DNA of 64,000 bases from Hemiscyllium ocellatum (GCF_020745735.1 NC_083427.1:3813438-3877437); one strand, 5' to 3'. Positions 1 to 60,450 are shown, counted from the first letter of the stretch. Numbers and translations are program-made. The notes: generated by a model from the sequence alone, not told the origin.

Positions 1-560
1 GCATGCTCCAGCCCACAATGAGGACCGGATGATTGACGGCGGGTTGCGACCAATAGGAGGAGGGTGGCCAGTGCTGGAGGACGGAGCGAATGCAGCTGGT
101 CCTCCAACCAATCGGAGCGAAGCGGGCGGGGCTACACCGGCCCTTGCGTCACCATCCCACCCCTCCGAAGGAGTCTCTGCGCAGGCGCCGCGTCGCCGCA
201 ACTGAAAGATGGCCGGGTTGGCGCGAGCTGCGGGCGTTGGCGAATGGATAGTGGCCGCAGGCGAGAAATAAAGCCAGTGTGAGCTAAGAGGTTTCATCGG
301 CGATCGGTGTCAGCCGTCAGACCTGGATGAGAAATCCCCCGGGCCCGCGTTTGCAGCTAACGGCAAAAAGGCCGCGGGCCTCAGGCGGTAACAGGTCTGG
401 GTTACCATCGCCATCTTTCTTGGGGGCGGTGTTTAGTGAGACGTGTGCGCGGCCGCCATATTTATAGGGGGCAAAGCTCTGGAGGGCGCATGCGTTAACC
501 TTCCTTTGTTGTGGGTCTGGATGGGGACTTGCACGTAGAAAACTCAAACCTTGAGAAAAG
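1..560 (+). promoter_or_regulatory. CpG-island promoter/first exon of ZNF gene A (promoter family copy P1)
   Basis: CpG-rich. CCAAT at 50 and 108, GC box ~124-131, GGAGGACG-N14-GGTCCTCC at 76-105, paired CGCCAT(C/A)TTT YY1-type motifs at 409 and 455, NRF1-like GCGCATGCG at 486. Homologous to P2-P6. Confidence 0.75.
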
Positions 561-1894
561 TTTGTCGCCTCTGGATTTCTGTCGTAAACTTACTGAGATG
601 GTTGAAGAATATGTTTACTGAGGAAGGAAGTTTGGAGCTGGTTGAATGCTGAGCCAAAGGAGTGGCTTCAGGCTGGTTAAGAGCTGCTGTTATACTCCAT
701 ATGTTTAGTGGAGAGCAAGTTCTTCCAACTTGTTGGGAGCTTTTTTTATTAGCTGTTGCAGCCTTGCAGGTTGGGACTGCCAGTTGGGGGTTGGCTCCAC
801 TGCAGCCCTGCTTCAAGGATTATGATCCTTCAGACCGGATTCTCGCAGTAACAGGCTTGTCCAATGTTCTTAAACCTGGGAAGATAACACCTAACCAGTG
901 CTCTGTTTCCCCCTCTGCCCTCCCTTAACAGCTCTCTGTCACTGTCTACTTTCTTCCAACTCAAATTTAGGGATATGTTTTAGCTCTGTTTTGTATTTTG
1001 CTGTTACTTTCTCAGACCTTGTCTAAATGAGATTTGTACTGCTGCTCATCCCTGATCATGTGCTGCTGACTCGCTAGCTTTATGCTCCCTCAATGTGTTT
1101 CAGAGTCGATCCTTTTTTCCAGCGTAGGAGTCCATTTCCCTTCTGTTTCTGAGAATTAAGTTCAGTGCTGTTTTATTTCCTGTTTTCCCCTTGTTTTAAC
1201 TCCATTTTTTTCTCTCTCTGTCAGACACCTGCAAGCATTGCCAGTACCAAGTTGCTTGTAATAATGATGATGATGTTTGACCTTCTTGAACCATTGCAGT
1301 CGTGTGGCGGAGGTGCTCCCACAGTGTTGTTTGTTTGGTAAGTTGTTACAGAATATTTATCCAGTGATGGTGAAGGGTTAATGATATATGTCCAAATCAA
1401 CAATCACTTGTGTTTCAAATTTAATAGCATGTTCCAAGGGATTTCACAGAAATGTGATAGAGGGATATTTGATACTGAATTACTGCAGTAATATTAGGCC
1501 AAGTGACCAAAATCTTTGCCAGGTGATTAGGTTTTAAGGAGAATCTTGATGGAGGAAGGAGAAGCTGGGAGGTTTTGGGTGGGAATTCCAGAAGAAATGG
1601 CCACCAGTAGTGAAGCGAATCGTAAACACACTGTTGGAGGCTGAAACTAAATGAGAAGCAGAGATCTCGAAGTTTGAGTGGCACGAGGAGAGTGCAAAGA
1701 TGGGGCTGGTCGCAGCCATCAAAGAAATTGAGAATGAGAATTCTAAAATGTTTCTGCTTTCAATTGGGAGCCTTCAAGGTCAGTGAGCATGGGAATGCTA
1801 GGTGAACGAGGCCTGGTGTAAGTAAGCACACAGACAGCAGAGTTTCGGCTGACTGGGTGCCCTTAGGACAAAAGGGCATGGCCTCAAGATTAGA

Positions 1895-2095
1895 GGGTTC
1901 AGGTTTGGATGTAGGCTTGCTCACCGAGCTGAAAGTTTAATTTCCAGACATTTTGTTACCCTACTAGGTAACCTCTTCAGTGGGCCTCAGGCGAAGCATT
2001 GCTGAAACGTTTTGCTTTCTATTTCTATGTTTGAGTTTCTTTGGGTTGGTGATGTTATTTCCTGTGGTGAAGTCACTTCCTGTTCCTTTTCTCAG
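1895..2095 (-). mobile_element. Penelope-like element terminal fragment with decayed hammerhead motif (1944-1983)
   Basis: Minus strand reads CCA-CTGAAGA-GGTTACC-TAGTA-GGGTAAC-AAAATGTC-TGG, similar to the 13620-13900 element. Confidence 0.5.
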
Positions 2096-2099
2096 AGAT

Positions 2100-2370: not shown

Positions 2371-2748
2371 CCATTTGTTCACATATAAATATCCCTTTCC
2401 ATCATTATCTGCCTCACCCACCACTGCCTGCCTCTCTCTCTACTCAACTCAAGGCCAGAGTGTTGTGCAGGTCTGGTCTGAATGGCAAATTCCCTCTCCT
2501 GATGGATATTACTGAACCACTGGGGGGGGGGGGTTTTCTCCCACCTTTTCCTGGCCTCTCATGTTTCCAGATTAATTCAGCTCAATTTCACAACCGATCT
2601 GTGTTTTTGAGGGTTTTCTCTCACTCCCTTTTCTTTTCCTGTTTTTAAACATTTCACAGAATATTAGGAGGGGAGGACGTGCAGTTGGGAAACCCAAGTC
2701 GAACACCACATCCGAGTGTGCGATTTATCGAGGCCCGAGATTTTGACC

Positions 2749-3618
2749 ATGGAAGGAGAAAGCACTGTACAGAGTGGGGAGAGACCATACACGTGTTCCG
2801 TGTGTGGGCAAGGCTTCAGCCGAGCATCTGGCTTGTCAGAACACAAATGGAGTCACAACGGAGGAAAGCCGTGGAAATGTGAGGACTGTGGGAAGGGATT
2901 CATTTCCCCGTCGAAGCTGGAAGCTCATCGGCGCACTCACACCGGGGAGAGGCCGTTCCCCTGCTCCGTCTGTGACAAGAGATTCGCCCTGCCCGCTGAC
3001 TTGCTGAGACACCAACGTGTTCACACCGACGAAAGACCTTTCCAGTGCCCGGACTGCACCAAGTGCTACAAAAGCTCCGGGGAGCTGATGCGCCACCAAC
3101 GCGTTCACACGGACGAGAGACCGTTCCGGTGCTCTCTGTGCGGCTCCGGGTTCCGGACCTCTCCGGACCTCACTGTCCACCAGCGCGTCCACACCGGGGA
3201 GAGGCCGTTCACGTGCTCCCTGTGCGGGAAGGGATTCACTCAGTCCTCCAGCCTGATGACACACTACCGCGTTCACACTGGGGAAAAGCCGTTCATCTGC
3301 TCCATGTGCGGGAAGGGCTTCACCTCCTCGTTCAACCTGCTGACGCACCAGCGGGTTCACACCGAGGAGTCCCCGTTCAGGTGCTCCCCCTGCGGGATTC
3401 GCTTCAAGCACTCCTCCCAACTCGCTGCACACCAGAGACTTCACAGCGGGGAGAGGCCGTTCACCTGCTCCAAGTGCGGGAAGGGGTTCACTCAGTCGTA
3501 CAACCTGCTGATCCACCAGCGGGTTCACACCGGGGAGAGGCCGTTCACCTGCGCCAAGTGTGGCAAGGGGTTCACGTGTTCGTCCCACCTGCTGAGGCAC
3601 CAGCGGGTTCACAAGTGA
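2749..3618 (+). CDS. C2H2 zinc-finger protein A (10 fingers, no KRAB/SCAN/BTB)
   Basis: ORF with 10 CxxC-x12-HxxxH fingers and HTGERPF linkers. ATG at 2749 in good context (accATGg). Pyrimidine tract plus AG acceptor at ~2659. Confidence 0.92.
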
Positions 3619-3780
3619 TGTGGATGTTGCTAAATCGCACACTTAGAGGGGACGTAAGAGTATTGGATACGTCTTTCAAGTTAATAACACACTGGCGCCA
3701 GGTAGGATGTGCCTGAGAACACTGATGGAAGTGAGAGTGGAAGGTGTGGCCATAAATTTTCAACCTTCCTTCCATGGTGT

Positions 3781-4098
3781 TTAGATTAGATTAGATTACT
3801 TACAGTGTGGAAACAGGCCCTTCGGCCCAACAAGTCCACGCCGACCCGCCGAAGCGCAACCCGCCCATACCCCCACATTTACCCCTTACCTAACACTACG
3901 GGCAATTTAGCACGGCCAATTCACCTGACCCGCACATCTTTGGACTGTGGGAGGAAACCGGAGCACCCGGAGGAAACCCACGCAGACACTGGGAGAACGT
4001 GCAAACTCCACACAGTCTGTCGCCTGAGTCGGGAATTGAACCCGGGTCTCAGGAGCTGTGAGGCAGCAGTGCTAACCACTGTGCCACCGTGCCGCCCG
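3781..4098 (-). mobile_element. HE1-like V-SINE, near full length
   Basis: Complete tRNA head, V-domain TGTGTGGAGTTTGCACGTTCTCCC, (TCTAA)n tail. Confidence 0.9.
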
Positions 4099-4852: not shown

Positions 4853-5200
4853 AGCACGGTGGCTCAGTGGTTAGCACCGCTGCCTCACGGTGTCAGGGAC
4901 CTGGGTTCAATTCCAGCCTCAGGTGACTGTGTGAAGTTTGCACATTCTCTTTGTGTCTGTGTGAGTTTCCTCCGGGTGCTCTGGTTTCCTCCCGCAGTCC
5001 AAAGATGTGCAGGTTAGGGTGAATTGGCCGTGTTAAATTGCCTGTAGTGTTCAGGGATATGTAGGTTAGGTGCATTAGTCAAGGGTAAACATAGGATAAG
5101 GGGCTTGGGTCTGGGTGGGTTACTCTTCAGGGGGTCGGTGTGGACTCATTGGGATGAAGGGCCTATTTTTACAATGTAGGGAATCTTAAAAATCTAAATC
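4853..5200 (+). mobile_element. HE1-like V-SINE
   Basis: Same family sequence on the plus strand. Confidence 0.85.
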
Positions 5201-5209
5201 TCTCATCTG

Positions 5210-10472: not shown

Positions 10473-10765
10473 CTAGATACCCTACAGTGTGGAAACAGGC
10501 CCTTCGGCCCAACACCAACCCTGCAGAGAGTAACCTACCCAGACTCCTTTCCCTACATTTACCCCTGACTAATGCACCTAACACTATGGGGCAATCTAAC
10601 TTGGCCAATTCACCTAACCTGCACATCTCTGGACTGAGAGGGGAAACCCATGCAGACATGGGGCAAATGTGCAAACTACACCCAGACAGTGGCCCAAGGC
10701 TGGAATTGAACCCGGGTCCCTGGCGCTGTGAGGCATCAGTGCTAACCACTGAGCCACCATGCGGT
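10473..10765 (-). mobile_element. HE1-like V-SINE
   Basis: Family head, V-domain and 3' end recognisable. Confidence 0.85.
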
Positions 10766-17230: not shown

Positions 17231-17237
17231 ATGTGAT

Positions 17238-18270: not shown

Positions 18271-18307
18271 GAATGAATCCAGCTGAAGATCTACCAGAAG
18301 GGGAAAG

Positions 18308-18842
18308 GGGGCGGGGCTGGAGGACCGTGTGGGAAGCGGCTGGTCCTCAAACCAATGGGGGTGAATGAGGGGCGGGGCTGGAGGACCGTGTGGGAAGCGG
18401 CTGGTCCTCAAACCAATGGGGGTGAATGAGGGGCGGGGCTGGAGGACCGTGTGGGAAGCGGCTGGTCCTCAAACCAATGGGGGTGAATGAGGGGCGGGGC
18501 TGGAGGACCGTGTGGGAAGCGGCTGGTCCTCAAACCAATGGGGGTGAATGAGGGGCGGGGCTGGAGGACCGTGTGGGAAGCGGCTGGTCCTCAAACCAAT
18601 GGGGGTGAATGAGGGGCGGGGCTGGAGGACCGTGTTGTGCGCGGCTGGTCCTCCAACCGTTGGGCGTCAAGAAGGGGCGGGGTTGGAGCGCGAGCCGCTG
18701 TCAAAACAGCGGAAGCGAATGGGGGGGGGCAGGGCTGGAGGACCGGACGGCCGTAACTGGTCCTCCAGCCAATGGGGTGGGGGCAGGGCTGGAGGACCGG
18801 ACGGCCGTAACTGGTCCTCCAGCCAATGGGGTGGGGGCAGGG
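18308..18842 (+). repeat. Tandem array of promoter core module (5 identical 61-bp units, 1 variant, then 2+ units of 54 bp)
   Basis: Unit GGGGCGGGGCTGGAGGACCGTGTGGGAAGCGGCTGGTCCTCAAACCAATGGGGGTGAATGA starts at 18308, 18369, 18430, 18491, 18552, 18613. Confidence 0.95.
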
Positions 18843-19290
18843 CGAGTGAAGGCCAGCACCGCGTGGAGGCACGTGCTCAACCCCTCCCGCGCAGTCGCAG
18901 TTCCAATGTGATTGAAGTCTTGACGATGGGCTGGCGTTGCTGAGGAGATGGTAAGGTGGGGGCTGAGACCGCGAAGAGCGGCAGGAAAATGGAGCTCATG
19001 GGGACTGGGTGGTGTCGTAAACATCCGGTATAGGTCTCCGGACGCGAGTTAGAAACTCTCAGTGTCTTTATTCCTCTCAAGGGAGGAAGCGGCTGCAGGC
19101 CTCAGGTGGTGACAGGCCTAGATACCGCCGCCATCTTTATTGGGACAGTGTTGCCCCTTGCGACCGCCATGTTTATGGGGGGCAAAGGGCAATGGGGCGA
19201 ATGCACCTCCCTCCTTTGCCAGGGGATGGATAGGGGGAGTATTCACACAGAACAAACTCGAAGCTAAAGAAATGTTGGCTTCTTCTGAAT
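18843..19290 (+). promoter_or_regulatory. First exon/YY1 arm of promoter P2 (ZNF gene B)
   Basis: Candidate donor ATG|GTAAGG at 18951, GGCCTCAGGTGGTGACAGG at ~19098, paired CGCCAT(C/G)TTTA at ~19129 and ~19166. Confidence 0.7.
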
Positions 19291-20573
19291 GTCTGCCGTG
19301 AATCCAAAATCTCAAAGTAAGACTGCAGCATGATTCAAGAAGGCAGCTCATCATCATCATCACCACCTTTATCAAGGGGCAACTCAGGATGGATAATAAA
19401 TACTGGCCAGCCAGCAATAACCAGGTCCCATGTGTGAATATTAAAAAAAAAGAAAATTACACACCTTTCAATCCTATTTCATTTACTGAAACCCTTCCAG
19501 ATTTCAGTTTTGAGGAAGATGTATTTACTCTTTTGATGCTTCCTGACCTGCTGAGGATTTCCAGCAGTTTCTATTTGTGTTTCTGCGGTGAAAATACGCC
19601 AACTTGGTAATGTGAAAATCTAGTTGGAAGCTTGTCATGAATTGAAAACTCCCCCTCCCCCAGGATGGGAGTCTTCGAGACCAGTGAGCATGTTTGTAAG
19701 GTGAGAGGATAACGATTTGAATAAAGATATGAGGGGTAATGTTTTCACACCAGGTGTGGTTCATCTGTGGAATGAAATCCCAGAGGAAGTGGCAGATGTG
19801 GGTACGGTTTAAAAGACATTTACATAAGTACATGAATAAGAATTGCTTGGAGGGAATATGAGCTAAGCGCAGGTAGGTGCGATTGGTTTCGTTTGGGATT
19901 ATGGTTGGAATGGACTGAAGGGTCAGGTTCTGTGCTGTATGACTCTGGTTGTGAACAGTCTGGTTCAGTCTCAGACAATTACCAATAACTGTGATGGAGA
20001 AGTTGGTGAGGGATTAGAAAATCATATGATGGCTTCAGCCTTCCTAACATTTAAATGGTTAACACCTCTGTTCATCTATGCCAGGCGGGTCAGGACATTG
20101 TGACTTGGGGGTGGTCGTGTTCATGCTGTACCATGGTCCTTCACAGTGGGAAGGTTGAGGATTTGGAAGATGCTGTTAAATTACTGGTTGAATTGTAAAT
20201 ATCTACAATCCCTCTGTTTCACCCCCTGTCTCTCTCACCTCTTTTTCTCTCTCCTTCTCCATCCCCCATCCAGTGAGGCCAGGATTTTGTGTACACCCAC
20301 ATTGAATAGCAGATTCCCTTCCCTCATGAACCATCTCTGGTTTTAGGACAATCCAGCAGTTTCATGGTGCCAGTCGCACAAATGTTCATCACTTAAATCT
20401 CTCCATCTGCTGTTGAGTTTTCATATTATCTTCTTCACTCCCTTTATTTTTCAATTAATGTTGCAGGGTAGTTAAAGGAGTCCTTTTGCAGTTGGGAAAC
20501 TGAAACCAAACATCACAGAGGATCTAATGGATTCACCCAGTATATTGTAACCCGAATATCACTGGCTTCAGGC

Positions 20574-21812
20574 ATGGAAGAAAAAAGCAGCGTTCCCACT
20601 GGGGAGAAACCGTACATGTGTTCCGTGTGTGAACGAGGCTTCAGCCGACCATCTGACCTGTCGCGGCACAAGTGTGGTCAGACTGGCATCAAATGGTGGA
20701 AATGTGGGAACTGCGGGAAAGGATTTGATTACCCATCCCAGCTGAAAAGGCACCAGCGCAGTCACAACGGGGAGAAGCCGTGGAAATGCACAGACTGTGG
20801 GAAGGGATTCAATTACCCGTCCGAGCTGGAGATTCACTGGCGTACTCACACTGGAGAGAAACTGTTTACCTGCTCCCAGTGTGGGAAACGATTGGCTCAC
20901 TTACACAGTCTGCTGATACACCAGCGCGTTCACACTGGGGAGAGACCGTTCAGCTGCTCTGAGTGTGGGAAGGGATTCACTACCTCATCCCACCTGTTGA
21001 CACACCAGCGGGTTCACACTGGGGAGACACCTTTTAAATGCCCGGATTGTGATAAGTGCTATAAAAGTTCCGGGGAACTGATGTCCCATCAACGTGTTCA
21101 CACTGATGAGAGACCATTCAAGTGCTCCCACTGTGGGACAGGGTTCAAGCACTCGTCTCAACGCACTGTACACCAGCGAATTCACACCGGGGAGAGGCCG
21201 TTCACCTGCTCTGAGTGTGGGAAGGGATTCACTCAGTCATCTGACCTGTTGAAACACCAGCGGGTTCACACCGATGAGAAACCTTTTAAGTGTCCAGACT
21301 GTGGGAAGTGTTTTAAAAGTCCTGGGGACCTGATGTCCCATCAACGTGTTCACACTGATGAGAGACCGTTCAAGTGCTCTCAGTGTGGGACTGGGTTCAG
21401 GCGGTCATCTGACCTTATCGTACACCAGCGGGTTCACACTGGAGAGAGGCCGTTTACCTGCTCCGAGTGTGGGAAAGGATTCGCTCAGTCATCCCACCTG
21501 CTGATACACCAGCGAGTTCACACTGACAAAAGGCCTTTTCAGTGTCCAGAGTGCAGCAAGTGCTTTAAAAGTTCTGGGGAACTGATGACCCATCAACGTG
21601 TTCACACTGACAACAGACCTTTTAAATGCCCAGACTGTGGGAAATGCTTTAAAAGTTCTGGGGAACTGATGTCCCATCAACGTATCCACACTGACGAGAG
21701 ACCGTTCAGGTGCTCTCACTGTGCGACTGGGTTCAGACGATCATCTGACCTCCACGAACACCAGCGGGTTCACACTGGGGAAATGACTGTTCACCTGCTC
21801 TGTATGAAGTGA
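20574..21812 (+). CDS. C2H2 zinc-finger protein B (14 fingers, first degenerate; frameshifted 15th)
   Basis: 412-aa ORF. Acceptor TTGCAG at ~20466, AATAAA at 21950-21955. Confidence 0.92.
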
Positions 21813-25317: not shown

Positions 25318-26193
25318 TCACTTGTGAACTCGCCGGTGCCTCAGGAGCTTGGATGACTGAGAGAAGCCTTTTCCACACTTGGAGCAGGTAAACAGTGGTT
25401 CCACTCTGTGAATTCGCTGGTGTGCAGTGAGGTGAGAGGATCGCTTGAACCCAGTCCCGCAGTGAGAGCACCTGAACGGTCTTTCGTCAGTGTGAACAAG
25501 TTGATGGGACATCAATTCCCCAGAACTTTTATAACATTTCCTGCAGTCTGGGCATTGGAAAGGTCTCTCCCCAGTGTGAACTCTTTTGTGCGTCATCAGG
25601 GCAGATGACTGAGTGAATCCCTTCCCACACTTGGGACAAGTGAACAATTTTTCCCTAGTGTGAGTTCTTTGGTGTCTCCGTAAACTGTAGAATTGGGTAA
25701 ATCGCTTACCACACTCGGGGCAGGTGAATGGTTTCTCCTTTGTGTGAGTACTTTGGTGTTTCTGCAAGCTGGATAAATGACTGAAACCCTCCTCACACTC
25801 AGAGCAGGTGAATGGTTTCTCCCCAGTATGAGTTCTCTGGTGTGCATGTAATGTGGATAAATAAGCAAAACCTTTCTCACACTCAGAGCAGGTGAACGGT
25901 TTCTCCCCCGTGTGAGTTCTCTGGTGCGTACGTAACGTGGATAGCTGAGCAAATTTCTTCCTACATTGATGGCAGGTGAATGGTTTCTCCCCAGTGTGAG
26001 TTCTCTGATGTTTTTGCAAGGTGGATAAATGAGCGAATCCCTTCCCACAGTCATTGCAGGTGAATGGCCTTTCCCCAGTGTGTCGACGCCGATGGCTTTC
26101 CAGCATAGATGGGAATCTGAATCCTTTCCCACAATCCGTGCATTTCCATGATTTATCCATGGGTGGCGTGTCACTGCAGGTTGAACGATCCAT
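25318..26193 (-). CDS. C2H2 zinc-finger protein C (10 fingers)
   Basis: Intact ORF. First ATG at 26193, alternative ATG at 26160 (MDKSWKC). Acceptor CTCTCACAG at ~26413. Confidence 0.9.
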
Positions 26194-26619
26194 CAAAGCT
26201 TCCTGCGAATCTTTCTCCCTGCTGTCTGTGGGACTGCAACAAAGCTCTTCCTGCTGTCAGTTCACAGGGATACTCCAGCTCACGCGTGTCGTTGCTTTTC
26301 CAGTCAAACTGATGTTTGGAATCCTTTCCCCTCAGGTGGCAGTCAGACAATCAGAGGTGAATGATAGTCGGGTCCTGTCGAATTGAGAGATTCAGTCAGA
26401 TCTTTTAATTCCCTGTGAGAGGAAGTTGACAAGGTTAAGGACAGAGAATCCTACTTTCTATTGTACAATTTGTTCTTTCTTAGCTCCCCAAAGCAGTAAA
26501 CTCCCTGTCCCTTCTTCCCACTCCCAGTTTTCCCATCCCTCTCCCTCTCCCCAGGTTGGCTCCATTTCTTCAGGGACTCACAAGAAAATCAATAGGGTCA
26601 ATCATTTCTGCTTCCGGTC

Positions 26620-26960
26620 ACGTGCACCCTGAGCACAACACCTCAACGCGCACGCGCGCCTCTCCAAGGGTAAACATGGCGACGGCTACCAGTTTAGCCA
26701 CGGACAGGTTCCTTGGAGGAACCCCCGGAGTTGTAGCACAAGGGTCCTGGAGATACTCGTGCAGAGCTGGTGGTACTACTGCAGCCTCCCTGCTCTCCTG
26801 CCGCCTCTCACCGGGAGCAGAGCGTCGGTTTCTCAGCCCCACCGCCATCTCGTCCAACACGCGTGCGGGACAGTGCTGTACTGCGCATGTGTCCAACTCT
26901 CCTGTTGTGAATAGGGGACTTGCACCGCCGCAGGGGCTGCTGGGTACAGGGCCGCACCAT
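26620..26960 (-). promoter_or_regulatory. CpG-island promoter/first exon of gene C (P3, reduced)
   Basis: CpG-rich. Minus strand has CATGCGCAGT, GAGATGGCGG, donor CCG|GTGAGA at ~26811 and CGCCATGTTTA. GAGATGGCGGTGGGGCTGAGA matches P2 at 18945-18968. Confidence 0.65.
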
Positions 26961-28067
26961 TAATCTCGGTCAACACGAGGAAAAAAGGGATGAAGAATTG
27001 TCCGTTCGGCCCATCGATTCCGCGCCGCCATTCAGTCGGATCGTGGCTGATCCAACATTTCTCAGTCCACTTTCCTGCCTTTTCTCCTAATCCTTGATCG
27101 TCACCCCTCGTCAAGAATCTACCTCAGCCTTAAACATACACAAAGCTTATGTCTCCACAGCTCTCTACGGGTTGGACCTCCAACCCTCTGAGAAGATGTC
27201 CTTCATCTCACTCTCTTCTATTGAATTGGAAATGTTAACTGATTTTCTCTACATGGATGCTGCCAGACTTGCTGAATTTCTTCAGCACTTTGTTTTACAT
27301 CAGGTCCTGATCATCTGCAATATTTTGCTTTTTTTAATAACCTATAATTTCCGATGGAGAATTTGATTATAATTTCAGTTCCACTACAGCTTCTACACCG
27401 TGCATGCTTTTGCTCCCTTTGGGGCCTGGGTGATTAATGGCAGTTCCAGACCAATATGAAGAGAAGCATGGAGCAGGAGCAGGTTGTAAACTGATCAATT
27501 GGAGTCGAAGGCTGAGCCCAGATCCTCCTCACTGGCTGAAGCTGTGGATCATTTGTAAACCAATTAAACCTCAGCAGAAACCTGGATCTTTCTATATGTG
27601 GCTTTAAACATTGAAAACCCTACAGGGCTGGAGCAAACATCTCAACATTTGAGGGAACACATGAAACAATGCACAAAAAATTCAAGCGCTGACTTAAAGC
27701 AATAATTGAACAGAAAGGAAATGTCACTGGTTTCAACAAATGAACAGGCAGAAGGGTTAGGATAGGTTGCGGAAGGTTAATGACGTAAAGCGCAAAATAA
27801 AAATCTTCAGACAATGAATGAGTACTGATAGTCTCCTTGGTATGTATTCAGAGGGTTTGTTGTATCAGGTTTAAAGCATTAACGCGTTGTATTTTCCTCA
27901 CTACAAGATCAAAAGAAAACCCGATAACAAATAGGAACAGGAGAAAGCCATTTTGCTTGTCAGGCCTGCTCTGACATTCCTCATATCCACTATCCACTTT
28001 CCTGAGATTTCCGCATAACCTTTGATTCCCCTTTTGATCAAGAATCTAGCTCAGGTTTAAATATCAT

Positions 28068-31407: not shown

Positions 31408-32229
31408 TTACTTGTGAATTCGCTTGTGTCTGAGTAGGTGGGATGACTGAGTGAATCCCTTCCCACACTCGGAGCAAGTGAACGGTCTCTCCCCGGTGTG
31501 AACTCGCTGGTGTACAGAGAGTTGAGAGGATTGTCTGAACGCGAACCCACAGTGAGAGCACTTGAAAGGTCTCTCGTCAGTGTGAATACGTTGGTGGGAC
31601 ATCAGTTCCCGAGAACTTTTGTAGCACTTCTCACACTCCTGGCATCGGAACGCTCTCTCGTCACTGTGAACCTGTCGGTGTGTGAGGAGGTGGGATGACC
31701 GAGTGAATCCCTTCCCACAGTCAGCACAAGCGAATGGCCTTTCCCCAGTGTGAGTGCGCTGGTGGACGCTAAATTCAGACGATCGCTTGAACCGAGTCCC
31801 ACAGTGAGAGCATCTGAACGGCCTCTCCTCAGTGTGAACAAGTTGATGGGACATTAGGTCCCCGGGACTCTTGCAGCACTTCCCACAGTCCGGACATTTA
31901 AAAGGCCTCTCGTCAGTGTGAACCCGCTGGTGATTCAGTAGGTTAGATGAATTGTTGAACCCCTTCCCGCACTCAGAGCAGGTGAACGGTCTCTCCCCGG
32001 TATGAATGCGCCGATGCCTTTCCAGTTCGGATGGGGATCGGAATCCCTTCCCACAGTCTCCACATTCCCACCGTTTATCCCCGGTGTGACACCGCCTGTG
32101 CCTTGACAGGTCACAGGACCGGCTGAAATGTCGCTCACATACAGAACATGTGTATGGTTTCTCCATACCGAGAATGGTGCTTTTTCCTTCCGTGTTCAGA
32201 GTCCGAATGATGTGGGATCCCGACGTCAT
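31408..32229 (-). CDS. C2H2 zinc-finger protein D (9 fingers); start codon uncertain
   Basis: Intact ORF. ATGs at 32229 and 32166; the position homologous to the paralogue ATG is ACG (32193). Acceptor region homologous to genes A and E. Confidence 0.88.
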
Positions 32230-34449
32230 GCCGTTTCCACTTGCCCGACTGAAAATCTTCCCTTTCAAACAACCTATTTAATACAGTTGATTCAGAAAAA
32301 AAGGGGAGTGAGAAAGCCCACAAAAACACAGGCAGTTTGTGAAACTGAGCTGAATGAAGCTGGCGACGCGAGGGGCTGGCAAGGGGAAAAAGCGACTACA
32401 TAAACTGTCGATTGTCACAAACACCCAGCAGTTTCCTGAAAGTTCATCCCAGTATTGGGAACACTGAAGCCACTGCTTTGAATCCCTGCTATCAACGCCA
32501 CTCCGTCACCACCAAACCGATCCCAATCCCTGCCAACTGACCAGGCTGTTCACAAACTAGATAAAACATGTCATCCCAAGAGGAGCTTTGAACCACACAT
32601 TCCCATCACCACCAAGACCCCGATTTCCACCTCAATAACATTACCCAACACCACCCCAGTCTCAGCTCATCTGCTGCTGAAACTCTCGTCCATTCCTTTG
32701 TTATGTCCTGATTTAACCAGCCCAGTACATTCCTGACCACCCTCCCATATTCAAACTCCCTGAAATCTTGGAGGTCACCCAAGACTCTGTTGCCTGTGTG
32801 CTTACTCCCACTAAGTGTTGGTCGTTCATGTGTGCTCACTGACCGACACATTCTCCTGGCTAAGCAGCGCCAAACATTCCATATCCTTATCCTGATATTC
32901 AAATCCCTTGATGGCCTCTCCCTACTTCTATATTCTCCTCAGGCTTCACAACTCTCCAAGGTAGATCCGGTCTCATGGGTATCCCTGACCTTCATTGCTC
33001 CACATTCGGTGCTCTCCTTTCAGTTTCGGAAATCCTGAGGTTCTGGAATGTCTTCCCTAATCCTGTCCACCTCACATGCTCCTCCAAGGTTATCCTTCAA
33101 ACTGACCTTTCTCAACAACCTTCTGAGTCTCCTTCCCAAATGGCTCCTTCTGTGTACGGCTCCGCAATGTTGTTTTATGACATTTCCATAAAATGCGAAC
33201 ATTTTTAAAAGAATACAGGTTGCAAATACAAAAATGTATAGTGCTGCTCCTTCATCATTGATGGGTGAATAACCTGTAACTCCTTACCTTGCTGTGGGAG
33301 CACCTTCATCATATGGACTGCAGTAATTCAGGAAGGTCAAACATCATCATCATCTCCACTGGCAATGGGAGATTGACAAATATTGGCTCATTGCTGTGGA
33401 GAGAGAGAAAAACACAGTTGATGTTTCAGGATGTGCAAAATGAATCATCAGAACTAAAAACAGTGCAGAATTTGATGGTTAATATAAGCTCAGAAGTGGA
33501 CCATAGGGCAGGAAAAACGATTTCTTGCCGTGAGAAGATAAAGCTGTCAATGCAACAGCACAACTGTCAGGGATGGTCAGCTGTGAAACCTCTTTGAGAC
33601 ATCAGTTCGGCAAAGTAAAAGCTAAACACCAAAGCTGACTAAAATCGTTCTTACTGACACAGGGAAGTTAGACAATGGCAGCGAGGTAATCAAGGAGCAC
33701 AGAGGTGAAACCAAGCAATGGTTGGACATGGATTCTGATCCACAATAATGCAACCACAACAGTCTCAGAGCCACGAACCTCTCACAGGTAACAGAGAACA
33801 ACAGGAGAGCTCAAAATTGCAAGACATGCTAAAATCCCAAGAATAACATTTCACAATATATCCATACAAGATTAAACTAAAAACATCTCTTTAGAAACTC
33901 TTCTACTAACAACATCCCATTACATTTGAAGAACAACACACGCTTATTAACCTGATCTCAAGACTTGATCTTGTTTGATGATTTCACAGTGGAAATTGCT
34001 GGCTCTGACTGGATTGCAAAGTCCTCAAAAATGCAGTAACTTCAGCCCATTTACTACAAAGCTGCACTTATTAGCTCCCTCTGTGTTTAATATTTTGGTT
34101 CTCGAACCAAGACCTGTCATAAAATCAGAGCAAAAATGAAATGATAAGACCAAACGCTGTAAGGATTCAGCAGTTCAGGGATTTTCTGTGGAGGGAGAAG
34201 AGGAGTTAGTATTTTAGGCTGTGCAGAATGAACTACAGGAAACAAAAACGGTGCAGAATTTGGTGGACAGTGTAAGCTCCGAAGCAGAAGTGGAAATTGG
34301 ACAATAATCCACAAACAACTCCAGGCTGTGAAAGATAAGCAGGGAAAATAAAACTGGTCAGTCTGCCACATATAATCAATTGTCAGAATTTCATTTTTAC
34401 ATAAATCAGCAAAAGGAACAGCAGAATACTAAACACGGTTAAAATACGC

Positions 34450-37044: not shown

Positions 37045-37535
37045 CAATGGGCAGCAAGCTCCGCCCATTCATTCCAAACACTGCCCCCTACAAAGATGGC
37101 GGACACTCGTGGCCCAGTGACCCTAACAAAGATGGCTGCCGTTCCCTGGGGCCTGTCACTGCGAGCAAGCCGCGACACATCGTCCATTTTGTTGCCGACG
37201 TGGGGGACCGGGCGAGGATCCTATTCAGGCTTTGAGGCTGAACATAAAGTACGTTCGAAGCCTCTCCCACGCTTCCACTATTCATTTCATCGCTCCCTCC
37301 GATTCTCACCGTTTGTTGAGGTCTGAGATACGACGGACGGACCATCGATGGCCGGGGCGGGGGGAAATGGAACGATGTCAACCACGCATGCGCCTTACCA
37401 ATCGGGTCGTTCGGCATGTTTTAAATCACAATGGAAACGTCATCTGATTGACGGCTGGTCCGGACCAATAAATAACAGGGGGCGGACCTGGAGGACCGAA
37501 CTGGAGAGGCTGGTCCTCCAAACAATGGGAATGGA
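37045..37535 (-). promoter_or_regulatory. CpG-island promoter P4, likely driving gene D
   Basis: Minus-oriented paired YY1 motifs (CAAAGATGGC at 37091 and 37127), donor ACG|GTGAGA at ~37310 (-), NRF1-like CGCATGCGC at 37385, core with GGAGGACC-N14-GGTCCTCC at ~37490-37519. Confidence 0.75.
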
Positions 37536-38167: not shown

Positions 38168-39535
38168 TTAGTTATGAATTTTCTGATGTTTCTGCAATGC
38201 AGATGATCGAGTGAATCCCTTCCCACAATCTGAGCAGGTGAATGGCCTCTCCCCAGTGTGAACCCGCTGGTGTCTCAACAGACTGCATAATTGAGTGAAC
38301 GTCATACCACACTCGGAGCAAGTGTAAGGCCTTTCCCCAGTGTGAACCCGCCGGTGAATCACCAGCGTAGACGACCGACTGAATCCCTTTCCACACTCAG
38401 TGCAGATGAACGGCTTCTCGCCAGTGTGAATACTCCGATGTTTCGTCAGGCTGGCTAATTCAGTGAAGCCCCTCCCACACTCAGAGCACATGAACGGCCT
38501 CTCCCCAGTGTGAATCCGCTGGTGTATTACCAGCGTCGATGAGGAAGTGAAATCCTTCCCACACTCTGCACAGGTGAACGGCCTCTCCCCAGTGTGAACT
38601 CGCTGGTGTACCGTAAGGTCAGATGATCGTTTAAACCCAGTCCCACAGTGAGAGCACCTGAATGGTCTCTCGTCAGTGTGAACAAGCTGGTGGGACATCA
38701 GTTCCCCAGAACTTTTATAGCACTTCCCACAGTCTGGGCACTGAAATGGTCTCTCATCAGTATGAAGCCGCTGGTGTATCAACAGCTTGGATGACTGGGC
38801 GAATCCCTTCCCACACAATGAGCAGATGAATGGTCTCTCCCCGGTGTGAAGTCTTTGGTGTGCCAGCAGGGTGGATGACTGAGCGAATCTCTTCCCACAG
38901 TCAGAGCAGGTGAACGGTCTCTCCCCAGTGTGAACCCGCTGGTGTCTCAGGAGGTGGGAGGACTGGGCAAATCCCTTCCCACACTGGGAGCAGGTGAATG
39001 GTTTCTGGCCAGTGTGTACTCGCTGGTGCCTCAGCAAGTGGGAGGTGCGCGTGAATCCCTTCCCACACTCTGAGCAGCTGAACGGCCTCTCCCCAGTGTG
39101 AACTAACTCGTGTGCGGTGAGGTCAGATGACGATTTGAAGCCAGCCCCACAGTGAGAACACCCAAACGGTCTCTCATTGGTGTGAACACTTTGGTGGAAA
39201 ATCAGGTCCCAAGAACTAGTGAAGCACTTGCTGCAGACTGGACACTTAAATGGTCCCTCGTCAGTGTGAGTGCATTGGTGTGTCTGCAAGGTGGAAGAGG
39301 AAGTGAATCCCTTTCCACACTTTGAACAGATCAACAGCCCCTCTCCAACGTGACTGCGCCGATGTGTTTCCAACTCAGACTGGGATCGGAATCCAATCTC
39401 ACAATCCCTACATTGCTTCTCACCACTGTAACTGCATTTATGTTCAAACAGGTCAGACGATCGACTGAAGCCTTGGTCACACACAGAACACATGTACAGT
39501 TTCTCTTCATTGTCAACAGTCCTTTTGTCGTCCAT
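38168..39535 (-). CDS. C2H2 zinc-finger protein E (16 fingers, first degenerate)
   Basis: 455-aa intact ORF. Acceptor CACAG at ~39644, AATAAA on minus at 38038-38043. Confidence 0.92.
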
Positions 39536-48125: not shown

Positions 48126-48164
48126 TCAATGGCAAAGTTTTTACCCATTGATGAAAGGGTTGAA

Positions 48165-50227: not shown

Positions 50228-51119
50228 CATTCCCTGATGACAATCTCACATCTTTTCCCAATGTCACTGCAAGGCATTTCCATCCAAACAATGATCCAAC
50301 GCGCTCTTCAATACTTCAACTGAACCTGCCTTCACATTTCCAGGCAATACATTCCACATCCTAATGAGTATTGTGTGAAAATGTTCTCTCTCACAACCCC
50401 CTTGAATCTTTTGCACATCGGATTTGTTTTTCTTTTCCAAAATGGCAAAAACCTTCCTCCCATCGATAGTTTCCATTCATGATTTTGAAAAACTCAGATC
50501 TCCTCTTAGTCCCCTTCACTCCAGAGAGGACAGGTCCACTTCGTCAATCTATCCAAACAACTAAAGTTTCTCATTGCCGGAATCACCCTTGCAAATTATT
50601 TCACCATCCAATACAAAGAAATCACAGCTTCATGGGCAGCAACCTCCTCCAAGTCAATCCAAATAATATCTTTTAACAAACATGGCAGCTGTGAATGTGC
50701 ACAAACGATGTGCCACTCCTTCCTGACACTCTGCTCCTTCCCACCTACCCCTTCCCTCTCTGCCCTCCACTCCCCTCTTGCCCCCACCACCCTCTTTGCC
50801 CTCTCCACAATTCTTCTCGCAACACCCATTCCCTCCCAATGTCCAACCCCATTCCCCACAACGTCACAGCCCCTCACAATAACCCCCAATGTTGTAGCGG
50901 CCTCAACCCCCCCCAACCTCGCACCCCCTCCCCATTCATCCCGTCACCCCCTATCCTGCCACTCCCCCAACACTGCATCGTCTCATCGCATCCCCCCCCC
51001 AAAACCGTACACCCAAACCCACCCACATCGCACCCCAACCCCCTTCATGCCTTATCCCCCCAACCCCACCCTGCAACCACCCTCCACGCCGTGTACCCCC
51101 CCAATTTCCCCCACATTGC

Positions 51120-51610
51120 AGCCCCAACCCTCCTCCACACCGTATCCCCCCCAAACTCCCCCCACATTGCACCCCCAACCCTCCTCCACACCGTATCCCC
51201 CCAAATCACACCCCCAACCCTCCTCCACACCGTATCCCCCCAAATCACACCCCCAACCCTCCTCCACACCGTATCCCCCCAAATCGCACCCCCAACCCTC
51301 CTCCACACCGTATCCCCCCAAATCGCACCCCCAACCCTCCTCCACACCGTATCCCCCCAAATCGCACCCCCAACCCTCCTCCACACCGTATCCCCCCAAA
51401 TCGCACCCCCAACCCTCCTCCACACCGTATCCCCCCAAATCGCACCCCCAACCCTCCTCCACACCGTATCCCCCCAAATCACACCCCCAACCCTCCTCCA
51501 CACCGTATCCCCCAACACCGTATCCCCTCTCCCCCTACACAGTATCCCCTCTCTCCCCCCCCCCACCCCCACCACCACCACCACCACCACCACCACCACC
51601 ACCACCACCA
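51120..51610. repeat. 39-bp C-rich minisatellite (~10 copies) followed by (CAC)n
   Basis: Unit ACCCCCAACCCTCCTCCACACCGTATCCCCCCAAATC(A/G)C; (ACC)n at ~51571-51610. Confidence 0.95.
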
Positions 51611-51639
51611 ACACAGTATCCCCCATCACCCAGGGCCCC

Positions 51640-52210
51640 GGCCCCAAAACTGACCCCGGGCTCCTCTCCCGCGACCGTTGGGAGCCGACGTTCCGTCCGA
51701 TCGCCGGCGGCGCGAGGAAAATGGCGGCTTGCGCGTGCGCCTGACAAACCACCGGCCGCCTCCGGGACGCACTGCGCATACGCTCTCGCTGGCGGCGAAT
51801 GATCGACCGTCCAGTCCGGCCAGTAGCCAGCACGGGGGCGGGGCTGGAGGACCGCAGGGGACCGGTCCTCCAACCAATCGGAGTGAAGTGGGGGCGGGTC
51901 TACCGTGCGCGACGTCTGGCCGCTTGCCAGAACTAACGCGACTGTAAAAGTGCAATAATAATGGAGAGGGGAAACGAAAGGACGCTCGTTTCGGTTGGAA
52001 GATTTCATAAACATCCGGTGTACTTTCCCATGTCTGAATTAGAAACGACCAGTGCCGTGTTTGAGGCAAAGAGGAAGAAAAACGGGCTGCGGGCCTCAGG
52101 TGGTGACAGGCCCGTTTGCCGCCGCCATATTTGTTAGGGGCGAGATTTGGCGACACACGGCCGCAGGCGCCATCTTTGTCGGGGGCGAGTTGCAGCAGGG
52201 TGTCCTTCAT
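51640..52210. promoter_or_regulatory. CpG-island promoter P5, probably bidirectional
   Basis: Core GC box-GGAGGACC-N10-GGTCCTCC-CCAAT-GC box at 51834-51898. Plus YY1 pair at ~52123 and 52168. Minus YY1 site AAAATGGCGG at 51718 and minus donor GG|GTCAGT at ~51654. Confidence 0.75.
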
Positions 52211-52828
52211 TTTCAGCCTTTGGTGGTGGGTAAGTGATTCTGAAAGATGGGATTTACTTGCATTTGGAGAGGCAAGTAGTGGGTGGTCAGCATGGCTTTG
52301 TGCGAGGGGAATCGTGTCTCACAAACTTGAATGTGTTTTTTTTGGGAAAGTTAGAAATCACACAACACTTGGGTTATTTCGAAGCCCCAGCTCTCAGGGC
52401 GCTGCTCCTTCATCAGGTAACTCATGGGGCAGAATCATAAATACAGAATTTATTGCAAAACATTACAGTGTCATGCAATTAAAAACATAGAACATGATAC
52501 ATAGATACATTGAACAAACCTAGATTGCTGTTAAGTCTGTCATCTTTTAGACTGGGTTGCAGGTGTCGATTCATGAACATCTTACATTATATTTTTGCTC
52601 AAAAAGCACACAACCTGCAGACAATCAATCTATATAACATTCTATCCATTCCTACTTTGGAAATAGAACCTGTGTGACTCAAGGTTGTGATACAGACAGA
52701 CTCTAAACTCACACATTTCAGAGATTGTCTGAGCTGAGATATCACTTTTTAAATAAAACCTTAAGTTATGTCAAGAATGTGGCTTAAAAGAAGCACTGGG
52801 ATTTACGTATTAATGAACTGAAACTTGC

Positions 52829-53162
<334 letters not shown>

Positions 53163-55921: not shown

Positions 55922-56566
55922 TAGTCCCATTTGCCAGCATTTGTCCCATATCCCTCTAAACCCTTCCTCTTCACATACGCATCCAGATGCCTTTTAATTG
56001 TTGTAATTGTACCAGCCTCTAGCACTTCCTCTGGCAGCTCATTCCATACACACACCACCCTCTGCATGGAAAAGTTGCCCTTTCGGTCCCTTTTATATCT
56101 TTCCCCTCTCATCTTAAACCTAAACGCTCTAATTTTGGACTCCCCTACCCTGGGGAAAAGGCCTTGACTATTCACCTTATCCATGCCCTCAAGATTTTAT
56201 AAACTTCCATAAGGTCATCCCTCAGCCGCCGATGCTCCAGGGAAAATAACCCCAACCTATTCAGCCTCTCCCTGTAGCTCATACCCTCCAACCTTGGCAA
56301 CATCCTTGTAAATCTTTTCTGCCCACTTTCAGGTTTAATAACATCTTTCTTACAACAGGGAGACCAGAATTGAATGAAGTATCCAAGAAGTGGCCTCACC
56401 AATGACCTGTACAGCTGGGACATGACCTCCCAATTCCTATACTCAATGTGCGGACCAATTTACTTGCCTTCCTTATATGCTTTTCGTATCTCGTGATTTA
56501 TTTTCTGCCCCACATCCTGATGAATGCTCAGAGGTTTATACATAACTTCCATCAGGATCTTTTGCA

Positions 56567-56880
56567 GATCAGATTAGATTCCCTGCAGTGTGGAAACAGG
56601 CCCTTCGGCCCAACCAGTCCACACCGACCCTCCAAAGTGTAACCCACCCAGACCCATTTTCCTCTGACTGATGCACCTAACCCTATGGGCAATTTAGCAT
56701 AGGCAATTCACCCTGAACTGCAGATCTTTGGACTGTGGGATGAAACTGGAGCATCCGGAGGAAACCCACACAGACACAGGGAGAATGTCCAAACTCCACA
56801 CAGACAGTTGCCCGAGATGGGAATCGAACCCGGGTCCCTGGCACTATGAGGCAGCAGTTCTAACCACTGAGCCACCTTGC
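56567..56880 (-). mobile_element. HE1-like V-SINE
   Basis: Family sequence. Confidence 0.85.
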
Positions 56881-59215
56881 CAGGAATTCTCATTCCTGAT
56901 TTTCAAATTCCTACCAATCTCCAATCCCCTCCAGCCTCACAAACCTTCTGAGCTCTGTACTCTGTAGCGGCACAACCGCCCGATTTATTTTCTGCTCCAC
57001 ATCCTGACTCCTGCTTGGAGGCCTGTACATAACTCGCATCAGGATCCTTTGCGGTTCTTCAGATTCTACACCTTCCATATCTTGGGTTTCTCTTTTCCTG
57101 TCCTCCTGAATATTGTGGATTTTAATTACTTCACCATTGGTGACCGTATCATAGAATCATACACCATGTAAACAGACCCTTTGGTCCAACAGTCCATGTC
57201 GACCGTGTTCCTAATCTAAACTAGTCCTGCTTGCCTGTGTTTGGCCTGTATTCCCTCCAAACATTTCTATTCAAGTACTTACCCAAATATCTTTTAAATG
57301 TTGTAGCTGTACCTGCATCCACCACTTCCTCTGGCAATTCATTGCACATACTTGCTATGTAAAAACATTGCCCCTCAGGACAACTTTTCTCCTCTCACCA
57401 TAAAAAATGCCCCCTAGTTTTGGATTTCCCCCACCCTACGAAAGAGACCCTTGTTACTCATCTTATCAACACCTCTCATGATTTTATAAACCTCGATAAA
57501 GTCACCCCTCTGCCTCCTACGCTCCAGTGAAAAACGTCCCAGTCTATCCAACCTGGTTTTATGACCCAAAAGCTCCTGTTTCCAGTTCCAAGGCCGTTTG
57601 CTTTGGAATTTAGTCCCTAGAACATTCTGTCTCTGAACCTCATTTACAGTAAACCCAGAAACCCCTGTCTTGCTCACAGTTGTTTTGCGACAGGCCCTAA
57701 CCTCTCCACCTTGTCAAATGTTAATTTCTGGGGAACATCTTGGCATATTCTATGAAAAGTGCTATTTAAATACAAATTGTTGATTTCTACATATGTCACT
57801 GCTTCTTCATCGCTAGGTGAATAACCTGTAACTGTCTACCCATTGTGGGAGCATCTTCACCATACGTATGAATTCGGGAAGGTCAAACATCCATAGTCGA
57901 CTGGGAATTGCTAACTTTCTGCTGTATCTCTTGTTGGGGCTACCTGTTCCTCAGAGACACAAAATGACTGGAATTTTAGGAAAAAAAGCTTGCTTCAGCA
58001 GTTTAGCGAAAACAATAGTGCCTTTGAGAAGGGGCCTTTCCAAGGCAAAAGGGAGCATTATCTAAACAAGAAATATTTAAGGATGTACATTTCAATGATT
58101 TGTAACAAAACACAGAAGAAACAATGAAATTGTAACTTATGAAAAACATTGAAAAATCACTAAACTACAGCAAGTAATTAATGCTAGTTTCGTTAAGAAT
58201 GTATTCAACCATAAAAACAACATAACTTTAAAACCTTATAATGAAAGCACCAAGGCAAAGCATGAAAGAGATGCCTGGCTTATCTTGTTTGATTAGCTAA
58301 AAACTGTTTACAGTAGAAATAATTTTAAAAATTATAGTATTATTAATATTGAGTTTCTATAACAGCATCAACTTACTTTATAAGTGGGAATGGAATTTGA
58401 TAGAGTACAATGAATTCAGGCAGTCCTTAGAGATAAACGATCAGGGACATGCCCAAAATAGAACAGCCAGTAACTTTGGAATGCAACATTGAAAGATCCC
58501 AAGGCCTTGCAATTATAAGAATTGTTAAAAATCATAAAAAAACTAAGGAAACATAGGGCTGTCCATAGGGGTGTCCACGTTGATCAGGTGTTTTACATAT
58601 TTTGGTAGTAGGGAAAAAGAGGAGGGAATAATGTTGTAACAAGAAATGTATATAAATTCTAATTTTCACTGTAAAAATGAGTGTATGTCATTGATCTCTC
58701 TTCCAATCTGAGCTACACATCGTGTTCTCACATTCGAAGCTAGGTTCGGGGAAGATTCTTGAGCCTCTCCCTGCACTAACTGATTATTCTTTGAATAAAA
58801 GTCCACCACTTGCCTGAATCATGTCAGCTTCCTGAGTCTTTGTCCCCATTTACACCTTTGAAGCAAAATTAATGTTTCGTGATACGCAGAATGAATTATC
58901 AGGTAAAAAATAACCGTACAGAATGAGATTGTCAATACCAACTCAAAATGGAAGGGAAACTGACTCTAGCACAGGAGAAACAACGAAAGATTGCATGGGA
59001 GCACATGGCTCAGGAGCTGATCAGCAGTGGAAAGTCTTTCAGACACAGTTGGGAACCGTAACAGTTAAAAGTCAAACCTATAACAGTGAACGAACGGTAG
59101 GTCAGGATGATATGTGGCTTGGAGAGAATTGTGCAGATGATAATGGTCTTATGCTGCCTTTGTCATTCTCAGTGATAGAGGTCATGGGTTTGGAGCCAGG
59201 GTGAGTTACTGTATT

Positions 59216-59422
59216 AAAAGTGAATTACTGCGGATGCTGGAATCTGAAACCAAAAGAGTAAAAATGCTGGAAAATCTCAGCAAGTCTTGCAGCATCTGTA
59301 AGGAGAGAAAAGAGCTGACAAAGCTTTGACAAAGTGTCAGTTAGACTCGAAACGTCAGCTCTTTTCTCTCCTTACAGATGCTGCTGCAAGACTTGTGAGA
59401 TTTTGCAGCATTTTCTCTTTTT
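59216..59422. mobile_element. Fold-back element (family 3) with perfect 14-bp TSD
   Basis: TGAGTTACTGTATT at 59202-59215 and 59423-59436. Inverted arms. Central AGCT-TTGACAA-AGTGTC-AGTTA-GACTC-GAAACGTC-AGCT hammerhead-like variant. Confidence 0.8.
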
Positions 59423-59819
59423 TGAGTTACTGTATTGTTGGGAGATGCGCCAGTTCAGTTAACTGGAGAGTACTTCATCACACTCCGAGCATGTTCCATT
59501 CCCTAGTGACAACATCCTGCGGATTCTCCATTGTGCTGCTTACCATTTCTACCCAATCAGCCAGTGCTCTCCATGCCTTGACTCTGACTGTGAAAAAGTT
59601 GGCTCTCCCATCATGTTCTTTTGTCTGTTATAAACGGACAAAGCTTTTCTTTTGTAGATTGACACTAACTAACCCGCTTTGGCAAGCTTCTATCAAATCT
59701 CCTTCTCCTTCTCCTCTCCTGGGAGAACAGCACCAACTTCTTTCATCTATCCTAATAGCTGAAGTTCTTCATTTTTGCTGGAACCATCCTTGCTCAGCTG
59801 TATCCAAAAAAAATTGACA

Positions 59820-60450
59820 GCTTGATGGGCAGCAAGCTCCTCCCAGTCAATGCAACACGTTGCTATTGACAAATACGGCGGCTCTATGAGTGCATTAAGG
59901 TCGAGCTTTTCCTCCCTTTATCCCATCTTAAGCTCCAACTCATTTTCCTACCACCCTCCCTGTCCCCTCTGCCTCCATTGAACAGGACAAGCTCCTTCAA
60001 CCAATCGGGGTGGGGCTAACGTCCAGCCACGTGATGCCCGCGCATGCGCGTTACTGCGGCGACCGCGGTCTGGCCGAACGCCGCTGCTGCTGCAGGCGAC
60101 GGTAAAGAGGGAGTTCGAGCAGACAACGAAATGAAGACAGTGTGGACTAAGAACTTGCGTAAATGTCCGCTGTAGGTCCCCCCCCCGGAATAGAGTTAGC
60201 AAACTCCCTGCCCCGCGTTTGCGGTAAACGACTCCGGGCCGAAGGCGGTGACAGGCTCCGGTTGCCGCGGCCATCTTTGTCAGGGGCACCTGCCGCGGGC
60301 TGTATTTGTAGACGCCATCTTTGTAGGGGGCGAGCTGTGGCAGAGCGCATGCTCTGCTGTCCTTCACTGACAGAGCAGTGGAGTGTTTACATACAGCAAA
60401 CTCAAAACCAAGAGAAATCTTGGTCTGTTCTCGATTTCTGTTGTGTACTG
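59820..60450 (+). promoter_or_regulatory. CpG-island promoter/first exon P6 of gene F
   Basis: CCAATC-GGGGTGGGGC at 60001, CGCATGCGCG at 60041, candidate donor ACG|GTAAAG at ~60102, GGCGGTGACAGG, YY1 pair at ~60270 and 60313. Confidence 0.75.

Follow-up and report, generated by a model that had tools for sequence, protein, structure and literature searches.

The histone H2A and H2B genes stand head to head on a short shared CCAAT promoter and have been copied as a unit, the repeats being near-identical and active in all copies. Bidirectional promoters more broadly serve head-to-head genes whose transcription start sites (TSSs) are less than 1 kb apart, and in human divergent pairs the Nrf-1, CCAAT, YY1, Sp1 and GABP motifs are over-represented (PMC2077898). 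A different type of example is that of the zebrafish chromosome-4 FiNZ-ZNF genes, for which the account drawn on here distinguishes ‘sharp peak’ TATA and ‘broad peak’ promoter classes, with waves of expression at genome activation (PMC10547256). A literature search found no paper on the promoters of shark zinc-finger (ZNF) genes. At issue here is a 64,000-nucleotide stretch of the genome of Hemiscyllium ocellatum (GCF_020745735.1 NC_083427.1:3813438-3877437; ‘the window’, with positions counted from its first nucleotide), which holds seven C2H2 zinc-finger coding segments, A to G, and, besides coding exons and repeats resembling short interspersed elements (SINEs), six non-coding CpG islands, P1 to P6. 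The element in question is a promoter cassette with copies at five of these islands, and it probably descends from an ancestral head-to-head ZNF pair on one shared cassette that was copied in tandem, with different sides decaying in different copies.

With bidirectional promoters these cassettes have in common a CpG island, placed between divergent genes in the pattern across the copies taken together, the motif set and a central flip in GC skew. They differ in that the partners are paralogues, the whole pair is repeated and one side of each present copy is dead, and also in being known from sequence alone. ETS/GABP words, in contrast to the human divergent promoters, are missing from the alignable shark cassettes, the only one in the window being in island P3 itself, termed P3a. 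Unlike the histone repeats, the shark cassette arms are 55-62% identical and most copies are one-sided. The parallel with the FiNZ-ZNF genes lies in a lineage-specific ZNF expansion with an inherited common promoter type and, potentially, family-wide co-expression. However, the zebrafish classes rest on cap analysis of gene expression (CAGE) and on expression data, and in the part of that work drawn on are not described as bidirectional pairs, whereas the shark promoter, a CpG island with YY1, NF-Y and NRF1 words, is read from its nucleotides.

In its proposed full form the cassette would be one oriented core between two mirror-image arms. The core is a block of about 120 bp with NF-Y-type CCAAT boxes, Sp1-type GC boxes and a 10-bp inverted repeat. 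BLAST, together with a core profile built from the P1, P4 and P5 copies, places it in plus orientation at P1 (1..135, with CCAAT boxes, a GC box and the inverted repeat, and truncated by the window start), at P4 (37414..37542) and at P5 (51796..51905, or 51760-51905 at its widest), where a preliminary description of this DNA had put it; the motif series GCATG..CACAATG..TGATTGACGGC noted there is likewise readable at 1 and at 37414. In self-comparison and single-query BLAST, P1 1-116 aligns with P4 37414-37530, and P1 26-139 with P5 51796-51905, plus to plus in both cases. At P2 the core (18293..18843, plus strand) is amplified in tandem as 61-bp (x6.2) and 54-bp (x2.4) repeats, and nine of its units are matched by the core profile at 18293-18830 (E 4e-11 to 3e-7). 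Lesser remains are the dead left half of a core with its right flank, P3b (27402..27669, plus strand), which is CpG-free, has a flank collinear with P4 and gives a half-copy match at 27402-27463 (E 1.6e-4), and, at P6, a plus-strand trace of 22 bp comprising the CCAATCGG end only (59992..60013, E 0.11). Every core match in the window is on the plus strand, minus-strand matches having E values of at least 1, and a second, inverted core to the left of the P4 core was looked for and not found. The P4 core lacks an arm on its right side; 630 bp away on that side is the 3′ end of gene E.

Several details of the core are pertinent in their own right. The inverted repeat, TGGAGGACCG ... CGGTCCTCCA (10 bp), is retained at 73-112, 37487-37520 and 51843-51872 and in every P2 unit, with a spacer that varies from 7 to 13 bp. 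The 61-bp copies of the P2 core repeats (18308-18843) are 96% alike, and each unit retains GC box, inverted repeat and CCAAT box. Joined to CCAAT, the right half of the inverted repeat is an exact 15-mer that also occurs in a zebra-shark locus (L001), one of the two elasmobranch ZNF loci that made up the cross-species comparison, the other being from sawfish (L002). The zebra-shark locus has at 2200-2650, some 7.5 kb 5′ of a ZNF gene called there, modules of the form TGAYYGACG - spacer - GACCAAT in an array that ends in GGTCCTCCAACCAATGG and a GC box; the array yields weak core-profile matches (E 6e-4 and 2e-3) and no arm.

The arm is a block of about 350-480 bp with two YY1-type sites. It lies to the right of the core, in plus orientation, at P1 (142..620), P2 (18846..19328), P5 (about 51894..52262, listed from 51906) and P6 (60011..60479), as delimited by BLAST, arm alignment and an arm profile built from these four copies. 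The four align mutually over 200-550 bp with BLAST E values of 1e-13 to 6e-22 and identities of 55-62%. Three blocks are conserved, GGGCC..AGG.GGTGACAGG and two YY1-type sites of the form GCCAT.TTT.T..GGG(GGC), and an NRF1-type GCGCATGC follows them. Homology continues for a further 100 bp or so in P1, P2 and P6, up to a GT at which the three line up, and in P5 it stops at GGTAAGT, a strong donor-like sequence at 52230. We infer that the arm would comprise a proximal promoter and a non-coding first exon holding the TSS, P1, with its GGTGACAGG-type block, both YY1-type sites, NRF1-type site and putative non-coding exon 1, being an example of what each arm of the full cassette would have contained.

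On the left, the arm profile matches P4 on the minus strand (37303->37081, E 3.6e-11), all three conserved blocks included. This mirror copy, together with a left-specific distal block at 37047-37102, constitutes the P4 left arm (37047..37303, minus strand), which begins about 110 bp from the core and so mirrors the spacing on the right. It is 45-52% identical to the right arms, as against 55-62% among those arms themselves, a greater distance that would fit a left/right split predating the copying of the unit, though faster decay would look alike. The distal block consists of the outer YY1-type site and a stretch absent from the right arms; it matches P6 at 59825-59881 (75% over 57 bp, window-wide E 0.002) and P5 at 50632-50686, plus to plus, and a profile made from the P5 and P6 sequences alone recovers P4 with E 1.3e-5. 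The left-specific block is thus common to P4, P5 and P6, with neither its side nor its orientation differing among them. Its YY1-type word is damaged in different ways in P5 and P6, and was therefore probably intact in their common ancestor.

In P5 and P6 what is left of this arm, on the minus strand in each, is decayed (50632..50686 in P5 and 59825..59881 in P6). Between the P5 remnant and the core are C-rich tandem repeats (50993..51630; a 39-bp unit x9 and then (CCA)17), and next to these a proximal-left segment (51631..51795, plus strand) with an intact plus-strand YY1-type site at 51718 and an NRF1-type site at 51731. The proximal-left segment of P4 (37335..37401, plus strand) is collinear with P5 51686-51748, and its YY1-type site is decayed. 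P5 accordingly has YY1-type sites on both sides, at 51718 (+) as against 52121 and 52166 (-), some 400-450 bp apart, and the orientation of the YY1-type word relative to the adjoining gene is identical in left and right arms. The preliminary description had the YY1 arm on the right in plus orientation at P1, P2, P5 and P6 and on the left in minus orientation at P4, a YY1 site on either side of P5, and a decayed left arm at P6 matching P4, and all of this holds in the alignments, the last at 59825-59881 with 37047-37102. As to the P5 39-bp repeat (50993-51630) itself, its roughly nine copies are 98% alike, and the GC skew is -0.8, the minus strand being G-rich.

The relationships extend well beyond the islands. 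Low-copy self-matches relate the unit of gene D and P4 to that of gene E and P5 in an ordered series, 32455-33308 with 40067-40920, 34211-34378 with 41893-42062, 34999-35139 with 46944-47080, 37047-37100 with 50632-50686 and 37335-37401 with 51686-51748, and the cores correspond too. The unit of E and P5 is in turn related to that of P6 and a minus-strand gene-unit remnant, H, through 40484-41000 with 56888-57932 (three blocks), 47261-47378 with 59096-59211, 50494-50786 with 59693-59977 and 51973-52198 with 60125-60343. In all three units the blocks are collinear, plus to plus, from left-gene introns through left arm and core to right arm, and an old transposon fragment is at a matching place in P5 and P6. 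The duplicated unit therefore spanned the minus-strand gene, the cassette and the right arm. All seven ZNF segments conform in orientation, the plus-strand ones being to the right of a cassette and the minus-strand ones to the left. Such collinearity and such uniform orientation are both as would be expected of tandem segmental duplication of a multi-gene unit.

Which sides are alive can be gauged from CpG content. The observed/expected ratio (o/e) is 0.42 across the whole window, as in vertebrate DNA, and 0.7-1.4 over the cores and live arms, so that the island spans the shared region. On live sides the values are 0.75-1.07 for the right arms, 0.88 for the P4 left arm and 1.2-1.4 for the proximal-left segments of P4 and P5 (1.2 in P5); on dead sides they are 0.24 for the far left of P5 (50494-50786), 0.30 for the far left of P6 (59693-59977), 0.34 to the right of the P4 core and 0 for P3b. 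CpG depletion by side thus upholds the earlier suggestion that different arms died in different copies. The intact genes with an alignable cassette, A, B, D and G, each adjoin one CpG-rich arm that points at the gene. Words of the expected types are concentrated in the cassettes, which make up 7.5% of the window and contain 10 of the 11 YY1-type matches (0.8 expected), all five NRF1-type ones (0.4), 14 of 24 GC boxes (1.8) and 10 of 15 of NF-Y type (1.1), an 8- to 13-fold enrichment in counts that are of word matches, or predicted sites. Composition alone does not account for what the cassettes share. At the core of P4, P5 and P6 the sign of the GC skew turns from minus to plus, a change dominated at P5 by the C-rich variable number tandem repeat (VNTR), and a flip at that position would be as expected for divergent CpG-island promoters.

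Put together, the window would take in part of a poly-C2H2 zinc-finger gene cluster, its members lacking effector domains, that grew by direct tandem duplication of one unit, the unit being two paralogous genes head to head around a single CpG-island cassette. The pair itself may have arisen by inverted duplication of arm and gene, the whole pair being copied several times afterwards, and each copy would since have lost one side. P4 and its dead sister P3b would have lost the right arm and right gene. In P5 and P6 the left arm would have turned CpG-poor and, save for about 57 bp, unalignable; the right gene of P5 would now be a pseudogene, F, and from the left gene of P6 only intron remnants, H, would survive. 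A single core would presumably have served both directions.

Of most interest among the copies is P5, whose core and right arm are well kept even though its right gene is a pseudogene. Gene E may still be driven leftwards from it, since the 11 kb upstream of E (39600-50600, mostly repeats) contain no other CpG island and an intact left-pointing YY1-type site lies 80 bp to the left of the P5 core. A further-reaching proposal, which we consider rather unlikely, would make the cassette a two-way promoter specific to the family and kept by selection, in which the oriented NF-Y/Sp1 core with its 10-bp palindromic repeat would license both sides and the paired YY1-type sites in the mirror arms would fix the starts. 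Copies that look one-sided may then still work both ways, as P5 would if it drove E leftwards across 11 kb and the C-rich VNTR and gave a non-coding transcript from its right arm.

A number of observations weigh against an ancestral shared promoter. No cassette in the window combines two CpG-rich arms with two intact flanking genes, P4 being flanked by D only, P5 by pseudogene F and by E at a distance of 12 kb, and P6 by G and the remnant H; bidirectional use would therefore be a property only of the ancestor as we infer it. The gene trees have no left and right clades, identities being 66-70% throughout, and the 300 bp upstream of the ATG do not resolve such clades either. The left-arm remnants of P5 and P6 amount to only about 57 bp each, and the neighbouring 140 bp or so of their left flank are a fragment of an old transposon, present in the sawfish locus as well; in P5 this fragment occupies the flank to the left of about 50600, and only the inner part is promoter-derived. 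P2 has no left arm, its left flank being transposon DNA, and P1 is truncated at the window start. Neither the arm nor the left block was found in either of the two elasmobranch ZNF loci.

Island P3 is also a difficulty. P3a (26501..27200), the presumed promoter of gene C, next to which it lies, has YY1-, NRF1- and ETS-type words and no significant alignment to arm, core or P4 left region in either orientation, with the sole exception of 26867-26925 (59 bp), which resembles P1 470-534 (z 4.8, 0 of 300 shuffles). The core-like piece P3b is 200 bp outside the island, beyond a repeat insertion, and has lost all its CpGs. It is collinear with P4 over the core and about 130 bp to the right (z 7.4), which suggests that the two are sister copies and that the right arm had already been lost before they separated. 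Of the proposal that all six islands share parts, what stands is alignable DNA at P1, P2, P4, P5 and P6, the alignment that had been named as a check being significant in self-comparison for these five; the P3 island cannot be counted with them on its alignments, and for P6 the shared core is just the 22-bp trace. The ancestral pair on a shared promoter that had been proposed with it gains from the co-oriented cores, the mirror arm of P4 and the collinearity of the three units, and has to do without a demonstrable membership of P3 and without that part of the P5 and P6 flanks which is transposon.

The alternative that fares best, though we consider it unlikely, is a one-way ancestral module of core, arm and gene, with the minus-strand genes due to inversion or inverted duplication of an arm and its gene, on separate occasions, that happened to place them beside plus-oriented cores of neighbouring units, so that promoters would be adjacent and never shared. 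It would account naturally for there being no living two-armed cassette with both sides live. It also draws on the introns of gene A, which are as close to those of the minus-strand genes D and E as the latter are to each other, and left and right genes are therefore not separate clades. However, independent inversions would need the same landing three times, given that the left block is beside a plus-oriented core in P4, P5 and P6. The units of E and P5 and of H and P6 are collinear through the whole cassette, from left-gene introns to right arm, the left arm is at the same spacing of about 110 bp from the core as the arm on the right, and an inverted core is nowhere in the window.

It is very improbable that the cassette represents a mobile element's promoter end, such as the 5′ region of a retrotransposon carrying a YY1 site and antisense promoter, which transposed and was then captured by ZNF genes. 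YY1-type sites beside GC-rich VNTRs, as in P2 and P5, are reminiscent of composite retroelements, and a transposon fragment does adjoin the left flanks of P5 and P6. Yet every copy in the window is inside collinear segmental homology and beside a ZNF unit, none is scattered among the window's many true repeats, and element ends or coding parts are not present beside the copies. Neither the sawfish nor the zebra-shark locus has the arms, even though the flanking transposon is present in sawfish. Over the 64 kb and the two elasmobranch loci, matches to arm and core are only at the 5′ sides of ZNF genes, which is not the dispersal of a transposon. Convergence of unrelated CpG-island promoters on common housekeeping motifs (CCAAT, GC box, YY1 and NRF1) may well apply to P3a, with its motifs and its lack of significant alignment, and a core-like TGAYYGACG...GACCAAT array, exact GGTCCTCCAACCAAT included, does occur in an unrelated-looking zebra-shark locus, but as an account of the cassettes it can hardly be credited, being ruled out for P1, P2, P4, P5 and P6 by arm alignments of 200-550 bp (E 1e-13 to 6e-22), profile E values down to 1e-11 and homology that reaches non-motif sequence and flanking introns.

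The coding segments themselves are of uniform design. Intact genes have an ATG a few codons ahead of finger 1, a single coding exon and a conserved acceptor-like site 5′ of it, and Pfam recognizes finger domains only in the ZNF genes of the window. On the plus strand are gene A (2701..3615, 10 fingers, effector domain absent), gene B (20484..21809, 13 fingers) and gene G (63124..63918, nine fingers), and on the minus strand gene C (25321..26331, 10 fingers), gene D (31411..32265, nine fingers) and gene E (38171..39535, 15 fingers, frame intact). The pseudogene fragment F (52788..53150, plus strand) has about four degenerate fingers with cysteines lost and two in-frame stops, and begins 0.56 kb downstream of the well-kept right arm of P5. 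The remnant H (56888..57932, minus strand) is three blocks collinear with introns of E, its ZNF exon being gone. The exact ZNF proteins of the window are absent from the public gene collection, and protein searches gave no close orthologue and thousands of unrelated ZNF matches, the zebra-shark and sawfish loci being two of five elasmobranch ones. Scans of the window with Rfam and for tRNA genes gave no matches.

Repeats are abundant between the genes. At least 12 copies, 70-95% identical, belong to a SINE-like repeat of about 310 bp; among them are 3780-4097, 4853-5198, 10474-10771, 28057-28367, 30496-30788, 44795-45103, 47807-48121, 54733-55061, 56566-56881 and 61257-61652, and those at 3798-4088 and 36610-36902 are 95% alike. 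A family of about 600 bp has six or more copies in the window, at 15538-16224, 22614-22968, 42161-42808, 46164-46667, 49601-50227 and 55922-56456 among other places. Several copies are also in the sawfish locus, which makes the family an old one among elasmobranchs, and a fragment of it is the outer part of the left flank of P5 and P6. A low-copy repeat of about 1 kb, in both orientations and at 61-67% identity, is at 6488-7504, 16367-17237 and 43721-44794. At 60862-61004 lies a palindrome about 143 bp long that is 85% self-complementary and resembles a miniature inverted-repeat transposable element (MITE), with relatives at 23.9, 29.9 and 52.4 kb. An intron block of about 130-190 bp is shared by A (1266-1453), D (33247-33366), E (40769-40999) and H (57724-57908) and stands alone at 12005-12129 and 14036-14160; the ancestral intron would probably have contained it already, as an old interspersed repeat. 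Remnants of minus-strand genes at 12.0 and 14.1 kb were considered and rejected, there being no flanking collinearity and the block there probably being the interspersed repeat.

As the evidence stands, what the window documents is ordinary promoter inheritance within a multigene family, and an ordinary route of growth for such families. For this shark zinc-finger cluster it provides a growth model in which the unit of duplication would be a pair and not a single gene. It also singles out, as candidate control elements family-wide, the CCAAT/inverted-repeat core, both YY1-type sites and the GGTGACAGG-type block, all of them short, non-coding and retained in spite of a neutral divergence of about 40%. 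As a hypothesis, the cassette would give the family a common co-regulation module; were the two-way reading true, the cluster would have a common expression programme, comparable to the ZNF promoter classes of zebrafish chromosome 4. If divergent transcription does occur, the cluster would represent one promoter in two-armed, left-only and right-only states, a natural series for studying the directionality of CpG-island promoters.

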